Assembly (NCBI GenBank): GCA_037447605.1
Contig: CM074804.1
Coordinates: 1,550,001-1,614,000, forward strand
From: Zygnema circumcarinatum SAG 698-1b
Taxonomy: Eukaryota > Plantae > Zygnematophyceae
Length of the DNA stretch: 64,000 nucleotides
Direction: 5' to 3'
Shown here: piece after piece, positions 34,287 to 41,316 of the stretch
Layout of the letters: every line of letters begins with the position of its first letter
How positions within the stretch are numbered: position 1 is the first letter of the stretch
Program-made: the position numbers and the translations under genes
The notes under the pieces: model-generated
What the model was told of the DNA's origin: nothing
Seen by the model: only the letters and a program-made list of their open reading frames with translations
The model's database searches: none

Positions 34287-34380
34287 CCTGGAGGATAGAG
34301 CGCCACGCGGCCCACCCACTGAAGGGTTCAGGGTGCACCAAAAATTTGCGGGCGGGTGGGCGACTACGTGGCGCATACTC

Positions 34381-34667
34381 ATTGGTTGGACAGGAAAAAA
34401 AAGTGGATTGGATTACGCAGAGACCCTCAGAAATTTATGAAAAGTTTTTTTACACGTGTTCCGAATGTCACCGATTGGTGGACGTCTTTTTCTGAAAACC
34501 TAAAGTTCTCTGATTGGTCTGCAGACAGCGGGCTAGCACTTTTGGGTACGAAAAAAAAAAGGGATCGGCGGAAATCTACCCTTCTATGGATAGTACGGAC
34601 TATATTTGCCTTACCGTACAGTACCACAAAGTATGGTACGGATGCAGATGCCGACAAGCTCCAGTAC
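34381..34667 (-). promoter_or_regulatory. CCAAT-box cluster plus GTAC cluster upstream of RPL12
   Basis: ATTGG (CCAAT on the gene strand) at 34381, 34407, 34474 and 34513; GTAC at 34593, 34616, 34621, 34636 and 34664. Function is inferred. Confidence 0.4.
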
Positions 34668-35436
34668 ACTAACGGAAGGGCGAGTGGTTCACGGAAACAG
34701 TTCCAGTTAAAACTCCGTGAAACAAATGTACGCCCCTCCGTCAGGAGTTCAATTGCAGTTCCAGTTCGTGTGCACCCAAACTGTCACATGTGTCGTTCGT
34801 TTCGCTGTACAGTAAGCCCTCGATAAAGTGTGCCCCATGGCCATGGGACCAAAGGGTGGGCCCCACATTGAAAGTACTTTTTACCTACATTGCACCAATC
34901 ACAGCATGATGTGTCTCCAAGTCTCACACGTGGCAGACTGTTGTTGGCTGCCACACAAGAGGGGGCCTTCAATGGGCCCCATCACAACATACCTTTGAAA
35001 ATTTAAAGGTATAGCTAAGGTCCTTAACTTTATCGAGGATTACATCTGGTGGGTCTGCCATTTGCCCCTCACTGGACCCAGTTGTGCTAACACGGAAAGG
35101 GGAGCAACGCTTAACTGAGGCGACCCGTCACATGCACAGAGGTCTGCCGGCCAATGAGAGCAGCGCTTGTACCCTACAGCGCCTTACTATAACGAGGAGA
35201 AGTAAAGCTTCATAAAAGCCCTCTGATTGTCACTTTATAGAGGTTATCATTCCCTTTCCTATGTACATTTGATACTGTCGCCATCGTAAGACCCGTGTTA
35301 TTCCAACTTCTTTACTACACCATGTCCACAATAGGCTCCTTCCAACCCTCCAACCTAAGGACCCCCAAAACCCTAAAACCCACTTCGCTTTCCACAAATA
35401 TTCACATTTAAAGGCCGCCCAACAAAAAAAACATAC

Positions 35437-38400
35437 TTAATAATGCGCATTTCCAAGCTCTAAATCCGTTGCTGCGAACACCATAGAACCCATTCCGTTA
35501 TGTCCAACGGCTCCATGTAGCGACGACCCCCCCTCGTCCTCCCCCTCCTCCCACGCACTGCCAACTGACTCCGCGAACCTTTGAAGGGACTGGGAGACCT
35601 CCTCCTCCTCCTCCTCCCCCTGCCTGCTCCCCCTCCTCGACGAGGAGGCGAACTCGTATCTCGGGTGGCCCGAATCGCCACGCAGTTCTATGTACGAAAT
35701 CGGCCGAATATGCCAATCAAACGGACTCCCGGAACGCACGCGACGGGAATTCAGTGCATGGATCTCCTTCCTCGTCGCGCTGCCCGTCAAGTAGTCGCCC
35801 CATGAAAGCAGAATGCACCCCCTGCAGAAACACACCAACCCAGATTCAGAAAATTAGGGTTTCGATCTTCACGTCCATTAAAGTCCTGGGTTGAAGGCCC
35901 TCCTCTCCTCCCCCTACCCCTCCCCACTCTTCCCCCCTGTCCCTCCCTCCCTCCCCCCCTCCCCCCTGTAACCTCCCGATCTCCTCACCCTCCCTCTCTC
36001 CGTCTCCCTCTCCCCTTTCCCTCCCTCCTCCCTCCCTCTCTCTCTGAGGTAGGAGCGCTGACCAGCAGGCTGCACTGAGCAGGAGAATCGCAGAGAAGGC
36101 GATGGGAATCCAAATGTTTGGATTGAACTTGAGAAAGCTGAAAGTTTCCCAACCGAGCCAACACCCGTGGCAGCCATTGGACTCAGATATTGCGATAAAA
36201 ATGGGGCTCAAAACAATGCCTTTTCTTATAAAAAAACTAGATGATTTAAGCATCAAAACAAAGATAAAATGACCAGTTTAAGCGACTAAGAAAGGAACAA
36301 GCATCTTACGCCATGAAGGCCTGAAGGGGGAAAAAAAAAGTCACACCTGCACAAGTCGGCACCACCAATCTCAGATTCGGAGAACAAAATGGATTTCTGG
36401 GTTAATTGACAAAAAGGGAGAAAAGGGACGGCAGAAAAGTAAGGGAAAGGGAGGATGTCTACGGAGGGAGGGAGAGAGGATGGGGGAAGAGTGGGGGAGA
36501 GAGGGAGAGATGGAGAGAGAGTGAGGGAGAGAGCGAGAGGCAGCGTGCATACCCCACGAGAAGAGACGGAAGATCCATCGCCAGTCCCCTTCACATCTGG
36601 AATGTTCTACATGTCCCGCAATAAAAAGAACAGCGCGGAGGACCAAAAGAGAAAATAAAAATCAAAAGGGGATCACAAATGGGAACGAAACAACAGGAAA
36701 TTTCAGAGCTTCCTTATGTTCCCCTTACCTCCCCCACCCCCTTTCCGCTTTTTTTCTATGTCATTCCTTCCGTATATCCTCTGGGCTTTCAACGTTTATC
36801 CCTCTCTCTCTCCCAATCCCTCCCCCACTCCCTGTCTCTTCCTCTCAGCCTCTCCACCCCTCTTCCCCTGTCCCACCCTCCCCATCTTCCTCTCCCTCCC
36901 TATCCCCTCCCTCTCCCCTCCCTCCTCCCTCCCTCCTCCCTCCCTCATCCCTCCCTCCTCCCCCCTTCCTCTCCCCTTCCTCTCCCCTTCCTCCTCTCCC
37001 TCTCCCTCTCCCTCCCCCNNNNNNNNNNGGGAGAGGGAGAGGGAGTGGGAGAGGGAGAGGGAGAGGGAGAGGGTGAGGGAGAGGGAGAGGGAGGAGACAT
37101 GATACAGCAATGAGGATATAGGCGAGGATCTCTATTTGGAGATTGTTAAATATGACAAGAAGGGATTTATCAAAGAAGTTCTTTAACACTGCAAGAGAAA
37201 GGAAGACAGAGAGAGAGAGAATGGGGGGGAGTGGGGGAGAGAGAGAGGACATAGAGAGAAAGCTGTTTTACGATTCTGAAGACGGAAAGTTCAAAGTTCC
37301 CCTGAAACTGAAAAGACCATACACACTAAACCGCTCTATTGATGAATCCACTGACGTCAGTCGCTCGCCAACCCTTCAGTGCCCAGCAAAACGGATTTCC
37401 TATTTCCGGACGCATGTGAGTTCGTCAAATTTTGATATTTTTTTCTTTGCCCAATGTGACAACGTTTTTATTATATTGGTTTCTCTGCTCACCACAATGG
37501 CGTTGGAGATTGCGTAGGCGGTCACTAAGCCCTGCAGCCCAACCCGAGAACTTTCGCCTTCGATCAAACCATAGACACTCTTGTCTCCCTCTCTCTCCCC
37601 CTGGTGTCTCTCTCTCTCCTTTCCCCTCTCCCTCTCTTTCACTCTATCCCTCTCAATGTACAGTACCCCTCTCCACATCTGCCTCTCGCACTCTTCTCTG
37701 CTCTCCCTCCTCCCATTCCTCTACAAGTTTATGTCCTTCACCCCCCATTTCTCTCCTACCCTCCTTTATCCCTCACTTTATCGCTCTCCCTCACCTTCAC
37801 TTTCTCCCCTTCCCTTCTTCCCTCTCCTTGTCCCGTTCACTCTCCCTTTCCTCCTCGTTCTCTTCTCTCTTCTCCCTTCAGCTTTCTCTCTCTCTCTCTC
37901 TCTCTCACTCACCTCAAACTACTTAGTTTCTCACACAGCACCCACATCACCTCCTCCCCACCTTGCATAGAAACTCCTCAACACCATATAACGCAAGATT
38001 CCTTTCCTTCCGTACAGTGAACGACACCAACATGGAGAAAGCATAAAGTAACAAAAGACGAAAACAAAAAAGGACAAGAAAAAGTACAACAATCGAAGAA
38101 TTTTTTTGTTTTTTTAATTTAAATTGAAAATAGTACAGACATAGCCAAGAACATGGAGGTCACTTTAGGGTTTCAGAATTTTAGGGTTAAGGGCCCCTCA
38201 CCAAAGGAGGGGTCAGCCATGAATATGAGAATTCCACGGGTGCGGTCATAGTAAAGCCCGCGATGAGAGCTGCCAGCCAACTCATTGAACGCATGTGCTC
38301 CGCTTTCTCCTCCACCTCTCGTCTATTCACCTCCTTCAGCCTGAAGAAAGTTCAGGAATTAGAAGGAGAAGGGCCGTCTCTCTCTCCGCCTTTCTCTCTC

Positions 38401-39361
38401 TCACACTCTCTCTCGCCTCTCTCTATCCCTCTCTTTCTTTCTCTCATTGTTCTCTCTCTCTCTCCCGCTTCCGCCTGATTTACTTGTGCTCGGGAAAGGT
38501 CATGGGGAACGAAAAGGAAGCTCATAAGAGAGGGCAAAGCGAGTGCGAGAGAGAGAGAGGGGGGGAGAGAGAAGGGGGAGGAGAGAGCGATAAGGACGAA
38601 AGAAGAGGAAAGGGGGGAGAGCGAAAGAGAAAAAGAGAGAAGGACAGAGAGAGGATGGGCTGGAGGAGAGACAAGGCTACCACACCTTGTCCAAAGGTAT
38701 CTGAAGTTACCGAGATTCCGCTGTTGAACGTCTTCGTGCCTCCGTCTGTAAGTTACCAAAGATATCCCAAAACAAAAAACCAATCCAAAAATGTACCGAC
38801 ATTATTAGTCACAATAAACCGCACAAAGAGTTCGCCTGCAAGAGCACCTTACAGTTAGCACCTTGACGTTTAAAAAGAAAATGAATGGAATAATTAAAGC
38901 ATGCGCTACAAGTTCTACGCTTTCTTCTGAACGACGTATTTCATTTAAGCGCTCTCACAGCTCGAAACACTTGAAGCTTTGAAACATTTCTAGAAAAGAA
39001 CGCCTGCCCCGAAATGCTTGAGATGAGGGAGGGGAGAGAGAAACCCTATAACGCTTAACACCCTGAACCCTCCCCTACACCGCCTATAACCCTCGAAACC
39101 CTTCCCTGCGACCCTAAAACCCTCCAACCCTACGACCCTAAAACCCTGGAGCCCTAACCCCTCCAGCCCTGAACCCCGGCCCTCTGACCTCGTCCTGAGG
39201 CGGCGGTGGAGGCGCTGCTCGAGCGCCAGCTGGCGGAGGAGGGCGCGGTACTGGAGGTCCTCGTGGCGCCACGTGGCCCTCTCGTGGCGGAACTCGCGGC
39301 CGCGCTGGCGCCACTCGTGCGTCGTCCACGTGTCCACGGCCGTGAGGGCCGCCTGAGCCAT
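35437..39361 (-). CDS. ORAI: Orai (CRAC, calcium release-activated calcium channel) homolog, green-lineage type; central exons partly unresolved
   Basis: Supported exons: 39361-39189, 38745-38686 (RRHEDVQQRNLGNFRYLWTR), 38340-38202 (LKEVNRREVEEKAEHMRSMSWLAALIAGFTMTAPVEFSYSWLTPPL, TM1 with GF...E spacing identical to ORAI1 G98-F99...E106), 37531-37493 (GLVTAYAISNAIV, start of TM2), 36596-36553 (CEGDWRWIFRLFSWG, start of TM3), 36137-36063 (FLKFNPNIWIPIAFSAILLLSAACW, WVKF-like motif plus TM4), 35821-35437 (GCILLSWGDYLTGS...). The second half of TM2, the TM2-TM3 loop and mid-TM3 could not be spliced confidently; an N gap lies at 37019-37028. Confidence 0.88.
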
Positions 39362-39732
39362 GGCGGGCGGGCCCGGCCCGGGGGAACCCTAATTTCTGCA
39401 AACCCTAACTTTTCTCTGCGCACTTGCGAAGCCCCGTTTTTGCTTCCCTAAGAGAAATGACTAAGAGAAAAGAAAAGCGAGGGGGGATATGAGAAGTAAA
39501 ATACTTGCAAACCATCCTGCGTCACTTTGACATCCTCACTTCTGCATTGGTCCGAACCCTAATTTTCGCTTCATTCGTGAACTTTTCACGTAGCATTCCA
39601 AACTTGGACATACCTCACATGCCACACGGGGATCAGAGCGAAGCAGAAAAGCATGGCAATATTTCAACTGTACACGCTTACAGAGGAGACGAATAATACA
39701 ATGCAACTATTTTCGCGCAAGATGCAAAAGTG

Positions 39733-39854
39733 AGTGGGTGCGACACCCGGACTTCCCGGGAGGTCACCCATCTCAGTACTATTCCGGCCCACAGGCGCTT
39801 AGCTGCGGAGTTCTGATGGGATCCGGCGTAGTAGCCTAGGTATGATCGCACCAC
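39733..39854 (-). rRNA. 5S rRNA: 5S rRNA gene, dispersed single copy
   Basis: Minus strand reads GTGGTGCGATCATACCTAGGCTACTACGCCGGATCCCATCAGAACTCCGCAGCTAAGCGCCTGTGGGCCGGAATAGTACTGAGATGGGTGACCTCCCGGGAAGTCCGGGTGTCGCACCCACT. Box A/IE/box C are recognisable, compensatory pairing is kept (CCUAGGC/GCCUG-GG; CCGGA/UCCGG), and a TTTT terminator follows at 39729-39726. One A.C mismatch sits in the box-C helix. Confidence 0.93.
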
Positions 39855-41316
39855 GACAAAATCGTGCACAAGGACATGTACATTTAAATTGTCTGAGTAA
39901 AAAAAAAAAAAAAAAAAAAAAAAAATGGTGAAAGAAAAATAATGTAATGTAATGTTGAAGTAGTTTCATTCATGTCTTTTTCAATGAGAAATGGCCTCTG
40001 TTTTCTTGCAGAGGCCGACCAAGAATCCATGGCGATGGGCGGAGGAGGCTTCGTTTCGTCTGTGTAAAAATGCGAAAAAGTCGAGTGCTGCACTCGTCAT
40101 TTGCGCCATGCCCTATTTGTGGCGGGTCTGTCTCCCAGCGTCCACCGCCAGCAGCGTTGTGCGTCCACACGTTGTTGGGCCAAAACTCAATTGAATGCGC
40201 GGGAGGAAGGACCAAGGGCCAAGGGCGGGCAGGTCCCTTTCATTCAGAGAACCGTCTTACCTTTCATGGCAGAGCCAACCTGCTTTAAGCGTCAAAGAAG
40301 CTGAAGCTGAAGGAGCTGGAACTGTACTCGCGTTGCAAAGGACCCTTGTTTGTTGCAGGGAGGGGACCTGTACGGTACCTCCACAACACGGCGAAGTCGA
40401 ATGGGTTGTCGTTGTGAGAGAGCGGTCTCAATTGCCATTTTTCTTTATCTTCATGCAGAGTGAGAAAGACCTCGATTCGCTGGACACTGAACATGTGTTG
40501 AACATGAGCTGCAATTCGACGGTGCAGCCCGAAAGCCCTCTAATCCTCTCCTAAAGGGCCCCCACTTACCTACCAACCGACGTCTTGAAGGAGTACTAAA
40601 AACAAAACACAATTTTTTTGTTTTTTGAAACAAGGTAAAGAAAAAGCCTTGACAGAGATCACAAGTAGTTTCCACAGAGCATGCTGATGAGCCATGAACC
40701 CTAAATTCTGGAACATAACCCAAAGACACTGCAACGCTCACAAAAAAATAATGAAAGATCAACTAACTCTAAACCCCCTCCTCTGGTCCTTCCTAACACC
40801 CTTTCTTCAAACAATAAGGCGATTTCGCCCTTCACCCTAAAAAGACCAAATTACTAATCTATTTTTCTCCATAATGCAAAAAAAAAAAAAAAACACAACA
40901 CAAAAAAACGTACGAAAAACGCCTTCCCACTGCTGCAATTCTGCAACGAAGGAAAAAAAGCGTGACGTCACTCCCACATTCCCAGACAGCAAGAATCCTA
41001 CTCCCCACTCCCAAAAAAAAAAAAACCCTCAATCCCATCCTCTTACCCTGAACCCGACCCCCAGATAGCCCTACCCTAACACACTCACACCTCCCCCTCC
41101 CCCCCCTTCCACCCCTTCCCCCCCTCTTTCCCCCCCCCCCCTCCCCCCAAAAAAAAAACTTAAAAAAAAAACATTTAGACAAACACAACCCCCCCCCACC
41201 CCCTCACTCCCAAACTAAAGAAGCAAAAGAAAAGAAAAGAAAACCGGCCGGGAGGAGGAGGAGGGGGGTTGGGTTGGATAGGGGCGAGGGGGGGTGTGAG
41301 TGAGTGAGTGAGTGAG

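Follow-up and report, generated by a model that had tools for sequence, protein, structure and literature searches.

Knowledge of how Orai channels open comes almost entirely from animal proteins and disease mutants. The window analysed here, a stretch of 64,000 nt from Zygnema circumcarinatum, encodes on its minus strand an Orai protein whose pore helix carries tryptophan at the position of human R91, a loss-of-function substitution known from severe immunodeficiency (SCID), together with threonine, a gain-of-function-type gate residue, at the position of V102. According to reviews, STIM is absent from plants and green algae. A natural and long-conserved pore of this kind bears on how the STIM-less channels of plants and algae open, and on whether the effect of R91W is explained by the hydration balance of the pore or by a steric inner gate. 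It also presents a candidate Ca2+ or cation entry pathway for plant biology, lost in angiosperms.

The family to which the gene belongs is already recognised, as is its lack of a STIM partner. Reviews place green-lineage Orai in Physcomitrella, Selaginella and green algae, with a range that extends up to gymnosperms and a loss in angiosperms. The papers on these proteins in the literature searched give presence or absence and the conserved glutamate only, unlike the pore-level comparison made here. In that literature we found no electrophysiological recording of any plant or algal Orai, no functional or pore-level description of a plant or streptophyte Orai, and no account of either the Trp/Thr/Pro signature or the division, set out below, between type A and a Gln-106 group.

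A transcribed gene interrupted by an assembly gap

The gene is spliced and transcribed, its exons being joined in a 1943-nt transcript contig (X1). Exon 1 (39189..39803, minus strand, as are all exons below; X1 record 1, positions 1-615) comprises the 5' UTR and the start of the coding sequence, with the ATG at 39361. Its coding part (39361-39189) specifies the N-terminal MAQAALTAVDTW... helix region, and this N-terminus is homologous by tblastn to residues 1-67 of the Closterium protein P0005. A joint in X1 at 38745/39189, with CT..AC ends, leads to exon 2 (38686..38745, 60 nt), whose joints are present in X1 and in two further contigs, X2 and X3. Exon 2 translates in frame into a segment of the strongly conserved cytosolic helix that precedes TM1 (...RHEDVQQRNLGNFRYLWT...) and matches by tblastn residues 75-95 of P0002, the nearest full-length relative. 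Exon 3 (38202..38340, 139 nt) has canonical AG and GT borders, encodes the end of the N-terminal helix and the pore helix TM1, and is 85% identical to P0002 residues 96-141. Exon 4 (37493..37531, 39 nt; joints 37530/38201 and 36599/37493) provides the start of TM2 (GLVTAYAISNAIV) and is weakly matched by P0002 residues 142-154 in tblastn. TM3 starts in an exon at 36553..36596 ((R)CEGDWRWIFRLFSWG; X1 piece 36551-36599; tblastn match to P0002 residues 220-236) and continues in a short exon of 37 nt (36310..36346; VTFFFPLQAFMA), for which the joint 36137/36310 is found in X1, X2 and X3. The following exon (36063..36137; FLKFNPNIWIPIAFSAILLLSAAC(W); X1 piece 36062-36137) begins TM4 and contains a conserved KF motif, with tblastn matches to both P0002 and P0005. 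The last exon (35079..35821; X1 positions 1199-1940), also matched by tblastn, completes TM4 and encodes a C-terminal tail with a conserved PFDWH motif, the stop codon TAA (35439-35437) and a 3' UTR reaching to about 35079. By tblastn homology, the exons in the window account for TM1, the beginning of TM2, TM3 and TM4.

Two earlier candidate assignments were rejected on the transcript joints and homologues. One was the reading of 36137-36063 as TM2, which is TM4 on this evidence. The other was an open frame at 37188-37106 (...AVLKNFFDKSLLVIFNNLQIEILAYILIA...) proposed as a TM3 exon, which is intronic; this frame has no Pfam match and its inclusion would bring in an in-frame stop. The spurious but plausible-looking open frame in this intron extends over 37267-37100.

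A run of 10 N at 37019..37028, with CT-rich low-complexity sequence upstream and GA-rich sequence downstream, marks an assembly gap within the gene. About 188 nt of transcript exon sequence (62 codons plus 2 nt) are missing from the window: positions 854-1038 of the X1 record are unplaced, the ends of the joint 36599/37493 (GA..AC) are non-canonical, and P0002 residues 155-219, with which the TM2-loop exons were sought, have no tblastn match anywhere in the 64-kb window. The missing sequence presumably sits at the N gap and should encode the remainder of TM2 and the TM2-TM3 loop. The length of the absent transcript preserves the reading frame. Because of the gap, the window protein is incompletely readable, and its own full-length form was absent from the protein collections searched; P0002 was therefore used as a proxy for the fold.

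Register and residues of the pore helix

Read on the minus strand, the codons TGG (38279-38277), ACC (38246-38244), CCC (38240-38238) and GAA (38234-38232), within the peptide ...AEHMRSMSWLAALIAGFTMTAPVEF..., place Trp at R91, Thr at V102, Pro at M104 and Glu at E106 of human ORAI1; the segment from Trp to Glu (38232..38279) also includes L95, G98, F99, T100 and M101. These codons, together with Arg at K87 and Ala at R83, are those given in a preliminary description of the locus, which had called for their confirmation in cDNA. Exon 3 shows no variant letters and zero mismatches against X1, X2 and X3, which derive from three studies.

The ungapped register proposed in that description is reproduced by three alignments. 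The 46-residue peptide of exon 3 matches Pfam Orai-1 (PF07856) with an E value of 1.3e-9 and 38.4 bits (cut-off 25), without gaps and at positions 3-39 in peptide and profile alike; the domain is present in all full-length relatives. A profile of the relatives aligns to Drosophila Orai without gaps in TM1, its top matches being structures of the K163W mutant (equivalent to human R91W), and the plant Trp falls on the mutant Trp. Finally, all structural alignments of modelled P0002 with eight Orai entries start with an offset of 47, so that W116 corresponds to K163, T127 to V174, P129 to M176 and E131 to E178.

The fold was tested on P0002 rather than on the incomplete window protein, and as a monomer, so that the model holds no information on the pore geometry of the oligomer. 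The AlphaFold2 model (mean pLDDT 78.7) has the Orai fold of four transmembrane helices, and its TM1 reaches into the cytosol as a single continuous helix of residues 20-131. Its best eight structural matches are all Orai entries (Z 10.9-15.2; Foldseek probability 1.0; rmsd 2.4-3.7 Å over 125-144 residues). The tail after residue 285 has a pLDDT below 55, with only a short helix at 326-333, and holds the conserved PFDWH.

Animal Orai proteins (human ORAI1; Drosophila Orai, PDB 4HKR, 6BBF, 7KR5) share with this family the Pfam match, the four-helix fold and the ungapped TM1. The selectivity-filter glutamate (human E106, fly E178) is kept, as are F99, L95, M101, a basic residue at 87 and, in Zygnematophyceae, G98. 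In contrast, W replaces R/K at 91, A replaces R at 83, T replaces V at 102 and P replaces M at 104, while P0002 also has M at H134. The hydrophobic gate formed by F99 and V102 in animals is therefore retained at F99 and altered to Thr at 102, and of the basic inner pore (R91, K87, R83) Arg at 87 is the only basic residue left. Where animal Orai has a STIM-binding C-terminal helix, the tail here is predicted, in the P0002 model, to be disordered, and the long, highly conserved N-terminal helix is without a counterpart in animal Orai. The lineage, unlike that of animal Orai, is without STIM according to the literature.

An ancient signature under purifying selection

Among 70 TM1 rows from the green lineage and algae, we define a type A Orai clade of 34 sequences drawn from Zygnematophyceae, mosses, lycophytes, Psilotum and gymnosperms; its members include Closterium, Spirogloea, Sphagnum, Ceratodon, Selaginella, Diphasiastrum, Psilotum, Picea, Ginkgo and Welwitschia. 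The clade has support of 100/99 in a maximum-likelihood tree, in which the window sequence lies within a Zygnematophyceae group (97/94), nearest to P0002 and Closterium. That group is sister to land plants (98/97), with Chara outside. Type A proteins have T102 and E106 throughout (34/34), W91 in 33/34, R87 in 33/33 and an invariant F99; P104 is present in 29, the other 5 having L, I or V there. Type A further has Ser in place of G98 in its land-plant members, Met in place of H134 in P0002, and no basic residue at 83. Chara has Gly at 91 and keeps T102 and P104. At 91 the remaining 36 sequences have N, S, T or F, and at 102 most have Val; a second group of streptophyte paralogues (type B) has lost E106 to Gln. 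Arg or Lys at position 91 was found in 0 of the 70 rows. The window TM1 carries the full type A signature (R87, W91, F99, T100, M101, T102, P104, E106, F107), and the window also encodes the type A motifs ...QQRNLGNFRYLWTRLKEVNRREVEEKAEHMR... in the N-terminal helix, (R)CEGDWRW (RCE-DW before TM3) and, at the C-terminus, GSPFDWHIRP; the motifs of the TM2-TM3 loop fall inside the assembly gap. These relatives were recovered better by a single land-plant query than by a profile search of a large protein collection with alignment A1, which gave 7 matches, low-complexity words having probably swamped the candidates.

On this sampling, the Trp/Thr/Pro residues are the normal, ancient signature of one entire branch among the Orai channels of plants and streptophyte algae. 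The preliminary description had treated them as a peculiarity of this gene. The Trp/Thr combination does exist in a real, expressed gene, but it is not special to it: W91, T102 and E106 are essentially invariant, and P104 is in the majority, from Zygnematophyceae to gymnosperms. Because no sampled green-lineage or algal Orai is basic at 91, the label of a SCID residue is human-centred. The pairing of W91 with T102 arose once, in one clade, and so represents a single evolutionary event rather than statistical covariation.

The nearest relative, an independent transcript (L001), encodes an identical 37-residue TM1 block. The window and L001 differ across these 37 codons by 16 synonymous changes and by 0 non-synonymous ones, and dN/dS against L001 is 0.20 and 0.32, with dS about 1.7. 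By these codon counts, TM1 is under strong purifying selection.

A pore helix with tryptophan at position 91

Human R91W and Drosophila K163W (PDB 4HKS, 6BBH, 6BBI) have Trp at the same position of TM1. In those channels a single pathogenic Trp sits in an Arg-tuned pore and closes it, whereas in type A the Trp is wild type and the pore also differs at 83, 87, 100, 102 and 104. Human Orai1 loses its current when position 91 is Trp (PMC7034092, PMC7825772). Substitution of V102 by A, C, G, S or T is a gain of function, and V102A alone is constitutively open; addition of R91W abolishes this constitutive activity, V102A not being dominant over R91W (PMC7825772). One study by Yamashita et al. observed that STIM1 still opens the R91W/V102A channel, giving a non-selective current, and explained the effect of R91W by dewetting that acts at long range on the outer hydrophobic gate rather than by an inner steric gate (Yamashita et al. 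2020, PMC7034092). This engineered channel, which combines Trp-91 with a less hydrophobic residue at 102 and which is not constitutively active yet openable, conducting non-selectively, is the closest experimental analogue of the natural pore. It differs in having Ala rather than Thr at 102, in being gated by STIM1 and in being human in the rest of the protein.

The behaviour of R91W/V102A is an experimental precedent for a pore with Trp-91 and a weakened 102 that is closed at rest and can still be opened. As V102A rescues R91W in the human channel, the natural W/T pair plausibly makes a compensated, gateable pore. These data bear on the STIM-free channel suggested in the preliminary description; in the double mutant it is STIM1 that does the opening. 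We read the gene as an intact, transcribed streptophyte type A Orai orthologue; the most likely working model, to which we give a probability of roughly one half, is a compensated pore with the conserved N-terminal helix as its gating route. The analysis shows the gene structure, expression, register, conservation across the clade, purifying selection and fold; on the side of function, we infer conduction, compensation, selectivity and the gating role of the N-terminal helix. Where animal Orai has a basic inner ring, this pore would have an aromatic ring of Trp, and Thr at 102, being polar, would make the hydrophobic barrier at the outer gate lower. Such a channel would be closed at rest and would hydrate and conduct once activated; if human R91W/V102A is a guide, its preference for Ca2+ would probably be weaker than that of CRAC. 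STIM would not be the activator, and the most plausible route of activation would be the best-conserved part of the protein, the long helix in the cytosol that leads directly into TM1. The rules drawn from human point mutants may not be transferable to type A; S98 (in land plants), M134 (in P0002) and a non-basic 83 are gain- or loss-of-function states in humans.

It is also possible, if doubtful, that the principal gate now lies at the inner Trp ring, the shift originally proposed, with an outer gate made leaky by T102, P104 serving as a hinge, and opening by voltage, tension, a ligand or the channel's own N-terminus. The fixation of both W91 and T102 in type A, the inner-pore location of the Trp in Drosophila K163W structures, to which the family profile has its best PDB matches, and the human data, in which the constitutive V102A yields to R91W and STIM1 opens the double mutant, are consistent with such a shift. 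However, the study of that double mutant blames dewetting of the outer gate and not a steric inner gate (PMC7034092), and Chara combines T102 and P104 with Gly at 91. Nor is a proline kink obligatory, given the 5 of 34 type A sequences with L, I or V at 104; in the human channel M104 is not pore-lining and packs against TM2/3 (PMC7825772). Loss of human Orai1 current through W at 91 would also fit a type A protein that is no autonomous Ca2+ channel, acting instead as a non-conducting or auxiliary subunit or in some other membrane role. The second paralogue group makes heteromers with type B conceivable, and animals have an Orai-derived branch, Jiraiya/TMEM221, with a proposed non-channel role (PMC7016017). 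We think this distinctly unlikely: F99 is invariant, purifying selection on the pore helix is very strong, and E106 is invariant in type A while Gln replaces it in the paralogues, as expected if type A were the ion-coordinating subunit. The N gap within the gene and the spurious frame at 37267-37100 might raise the suspicion of a sequencing error, a pseudogene or a shifted register. An artefact of this kind is extremely improbable, as transcript contigs of three studies are identical over exon 3, the unplaced transcript keeps the frame, L001 shares the 37-residue block across 16 synonymous differences, and three independent alignments give one ungapped register.

A further and more doubtful reading makes type A a STIM-independent cation channel, closed by the inner Trp ring stacked on the conserved Arg one turn below and freed when the cytosolic helix of about 90 residues moves, perhaps in heteromers with type B. 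If gating by the Trp ring and N-terminal helix is correct, it would be a mode of Orai gating older than, and different from, STIM coupling. A helical-moment analysis of the conserved N-terminal residues against the pore-facing stripe gave a result that depends on the angle. The most conserved stretch of the family is this helix (human-numbered positions 51-87), in which Q58, N63, W68, R70, E73, R76 and E84 are invariant across 35 sequences.

TM1 codons and alignment register

The codons and positions set out for TM1 in the preliminary description were matched exactly when the minus strand was read. The frame there reads ...GAG CAC ATG CGT TCA ATG AGT TGG CTG GCA GCT CTC ATC GCG GGC TTT ACT ATG ACC GCA CCC GTG GAA TTC... 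and includes TGG (Trp) at 38279-38277, ACC (Thr) at 38246-38244, CCC (Pro) at 38240-38238 and GAA (Glu) at 38234-38232, corresponding to positions 91, 102, 104 and 106 of human ORAI1, whose numbering is used below unless a protein is named. These codons lie in exon 3 of the Orai homologue, which has canonical borders (acceptor ttcag/G at 38340, donor TTG/gtgagg after 38202). No transcriptome run contained a variant letter anywhere in this exon, and a sequencing error in the codons is therefore excluded.

The register proposed earlier is upheld by three agreeing lines of evidence. The exon 3 peptide alone (46 residues) matches Pfam Orai-1 with 38.4 bits (cut-off, 25 bits; E 1.3e-9), residues 3-39 falling ungapped on 3-39. 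A profile built from 23 relatives and compared with all PDB sequences found Drosophila Orai as the sole protein, with a gap-free TM1 alignment; the best matches were K163W mutant chains (6BBH and 4HKS), such that the family Trp falls on the engineered Trp, a mimic of human R91W. The AlphaFold2 model of P0002, the nearest full-length relative protein (85% identical to the window in exon 3, with the same TM1), has a mean pLDDT of 78.7, with helices above 90, and its best eight structural matches are all Orai entries (Z 10.9-15.2; rmsd 2.4-3.7 A). All eight structural alignments begin at an offset of 47 (model residues 97, 101, 103 and 109 on chain residues 144, 148, 150 and 156), which places W116, T127, P129 and E131 on fly K163, V174, M176 and E178, the equivalents of human R91, V102, M104 and E106.

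Transcript structure and the assembly gap

Transcript contigs of four public runs were aligned to window positions 34300-40200. One contig of 1943 nt (depth 67.6), from run X1, tracks the minus strand of the Orai gene through blocks at 39803-39189, 38745-38686, 38340-38202 (exon 3) and 37531-37493, then a block of 185 nt with no place on the window, and then blocks at 36599-36551, 36344-36310, 36137-36062 and 35820-35079. Every readable joint ends CT..AC, that is, GT..AG on the coding strand, and the joints are identical in contigs from X2 and X3, runs from two other studies. From an ATG at 39361 the frame stays in phase across exons 1 to 4 (137 residues), while the last four exons supply 179 more residues before a TAA at 35439-35437. 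The unplaced 185 nt, together with a CAG that the aligner had assigned to the intron acceptor, amount to 188 nt (62 codons plus 2 nt), the exact length that keeps the frame into (R)CEGDWRW. Searches of the window by tblastn with four full-length relatives recovered all parts of the protein except P0002 residues 155-219 (the remainder of TM2 plus the loop leading to TM3), for which there was no match within the window. The equivalent segment has to be in the assembly gap, an N run at 37019-37028 that swallows about 62 Orai codons; its low-complexity flanks (36840-37100), one a CT-rich and the other a GA-rich tract, are roughly mirror images. Because the missing segment falls in this gap and the frame is kept by the 188 nt, the gene is whole in the transcript and broken in this assembly. 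Gene models from this assembly alone would be truncated or would include a spurious open frame at 37267-37100.

Position 39773, in the 5' UTR, is T in the window and X1 and C in the X2 and X3 contigs, probably because strains or alleles differ. The introns and 3' flank of the gene hold scattered short telomere-like motifs, CCCTAAA/TTTAGGG (35370-35400, 38170-38200). Also on the minus strand, a long open frame with a BTB/BACK-type look lies upstream (42549-41320), and the next gene downstream (from about 33997 downwards) resembles a plastid-targeted ribosomal protein L7/L12, in keeping with a photosynthetic streptophyte as host.

Distribution and ancestry of the pore residues

The exon peptide was searched by phmmer against 1.84 billion representatives, with two further searches of a 5.8-billion collection, and TM1 was tabulated for 70 green-lineage and other algal Orais. 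The preliminary description had allowed that these residues might be universal in green Orais and already characterised. Universality holds for one clade, type A (34 rows), whose members include four Closterium strains, Spirogloea, Sphagnum, Ceratodon, Selaginella, Diphasiastrum, Psilotum, Picea, Ginkgo and Welwitschia. Here position 91 is Trp in 33/34 rows, position 100 Thr in 33/34, 102 Thr in 34/34, 104 Pro in 29/34 (Leu, Ile or Val in the remainder) and 106 Glu in 34/34. The exception at 91 is Chara braunii, in which Gly accompanies T102 and P104. The other 36 rows have Asn (27), Ser, Thr or Phe at 91, mostly Val at 102, and Phe or Leu at 104. Neither Arg nor Lys was found at 91 in any of the 70 rows; a basic residue there is therefore not a general Orai feature. 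Position 83 is never basic in type A. Land-plant type A proteins carry Ser at G98 (22/34 rows; P0031, P0034, P0036, P0051 and others), whereas zygnematophyte members, including the window, keep Gly. In humans, G98S is a gain-of-function myopathy mutation.

Type A was recovered in a maximum-likelihood tree with support of 100/99. Within it Chara is outermost, and the land plants (98/97) are the sister of a zygnematophyte group that holds Spirogloea, Closterium, P0002 and the window and has support of 97/94. As this tree mirrors the species tree, type A is an orthologous lineage in which W91/T102 was fixed before the Zygnematophyceae-embryophyte split. The W/T pairing has a single origin and hence is not statistical covariation. 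Between the window and L001, an independent transcript encoding P0002, dN/dS is 0.20 in the N-terminal half and 0.32 in the C-terminal half (dS about 1.7), and in the 37-codon block LKEVNRREVEEKAEHMRSMSWLAALIAGFTMTAPVEF all 16 codon differences, both Thr codons included, are synonymous, a pattern that is the mark of a working protein and not of decay. The gene is an ordinary member of a widespread, uncharacterised streptophyte Orai clade.

Gating elements and paralogues

The preliminary interpretation is partly supported: codons and register stand, uniqueness to this gene does not, and the W/T/P pore is not yet evidence for a new gating mechanism. In human ORAI1, V102A/C/G/S/T are gain-of-function, M104 is not pore-lining and sits in a hydrophobic cluster packing TM1 onto TM2/3, and V102A overrides all tested loss-of-function mutations but R91W (PMC7825772). 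Yamashita et al. (PMC7034092) traced the R91W effect to long-range dewetting of the outer hydrophobic gate, and found that V102A restored hydration and that STIM1 opens R91W/V102A, giving a sizeable, non-selective current reversing near 0 mV. In the sole case built, a pore with Trp-91 and a weakened position 102 is therefore shut at rest but can be opened and then conducts. This double mutant is the best available analogue of the natural W/T pair, within the limits that S98 in land plants, Met at H134 in P0002 and the non-basic position 83 set on any interpretation of plant residues by way of human mutants. The analogue favours mutual compensation between W91 and T102 and does not decide which one gates. 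According to reviews, green-lineage Orais are present up to the gymnosperms, STIM is absent there and the activator is not known. The clade's pore differs systematically from that of the animal channel and is experimentally tractable, and we found no paper describing it in the literature searched.

Conservation is higher just before TM1 than in its membrane part. Across 35 aligned green-lineage and algal sequences, drawn from all three groups, conservation is greatest in the helix at positions 51-87 (exons 1-3; about 39230-38290), with Q58, N63, W68, R70, E73, R76 and E84 invariant and W51, R52, R59, N75, R77, V79, E80 and E81 nearly so. This helix is without counterpart in animal Orai. The P0002 model has a single unbroken helix from residue 20 to 131 (112 residues), the cytosolic part of which, about 90 residues long, leads directly into TM1. 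Further motifs occur between TM2 and TM3 (GK-x-[FY]V, EEEF, PPAPRRTF-x-FW, RCEDDW) and in the tail (PFDWH). Conservation of these cytosolic surfaces points to a possible conserved partner or intramolecular gating element, and we infer that the N-terminal helix is the most likely transducer. Arg-87 accompanies W91 in type A (33/33; mostly Lys elsewhere), and a cation-pi pair between these residues, one helical turn apart, is conceivable.

Type B paralogues (P0038, P0039, P0056, P0058-P0062, P0064, P0065 and P0067, from Closterium, Selaginella, Sphagnum, Diphasiastrum and others) have a TM1 of the form ...SNLAALFAGFAVVTLTQF, with Gln at the selectivity-filter position, and occur in species that also have type A. 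Human E106Q is non-conducting. The coexistence of the two types raises the possibility of heteromers or of a non-channel role. In two other proteins, P0009 (Chromochloris zofingiensis Cz07g20190, 433 aa) and P0017 (532 aa), a single chain carries a pair of segments resembling Orai TM1 (34-73 and 333-368; 33-69 and 305-340), with Gln at 106 and Phe, Ser or Thr at 91 in both repeats, which suggests that they may be natural tandem Orai concatemers.
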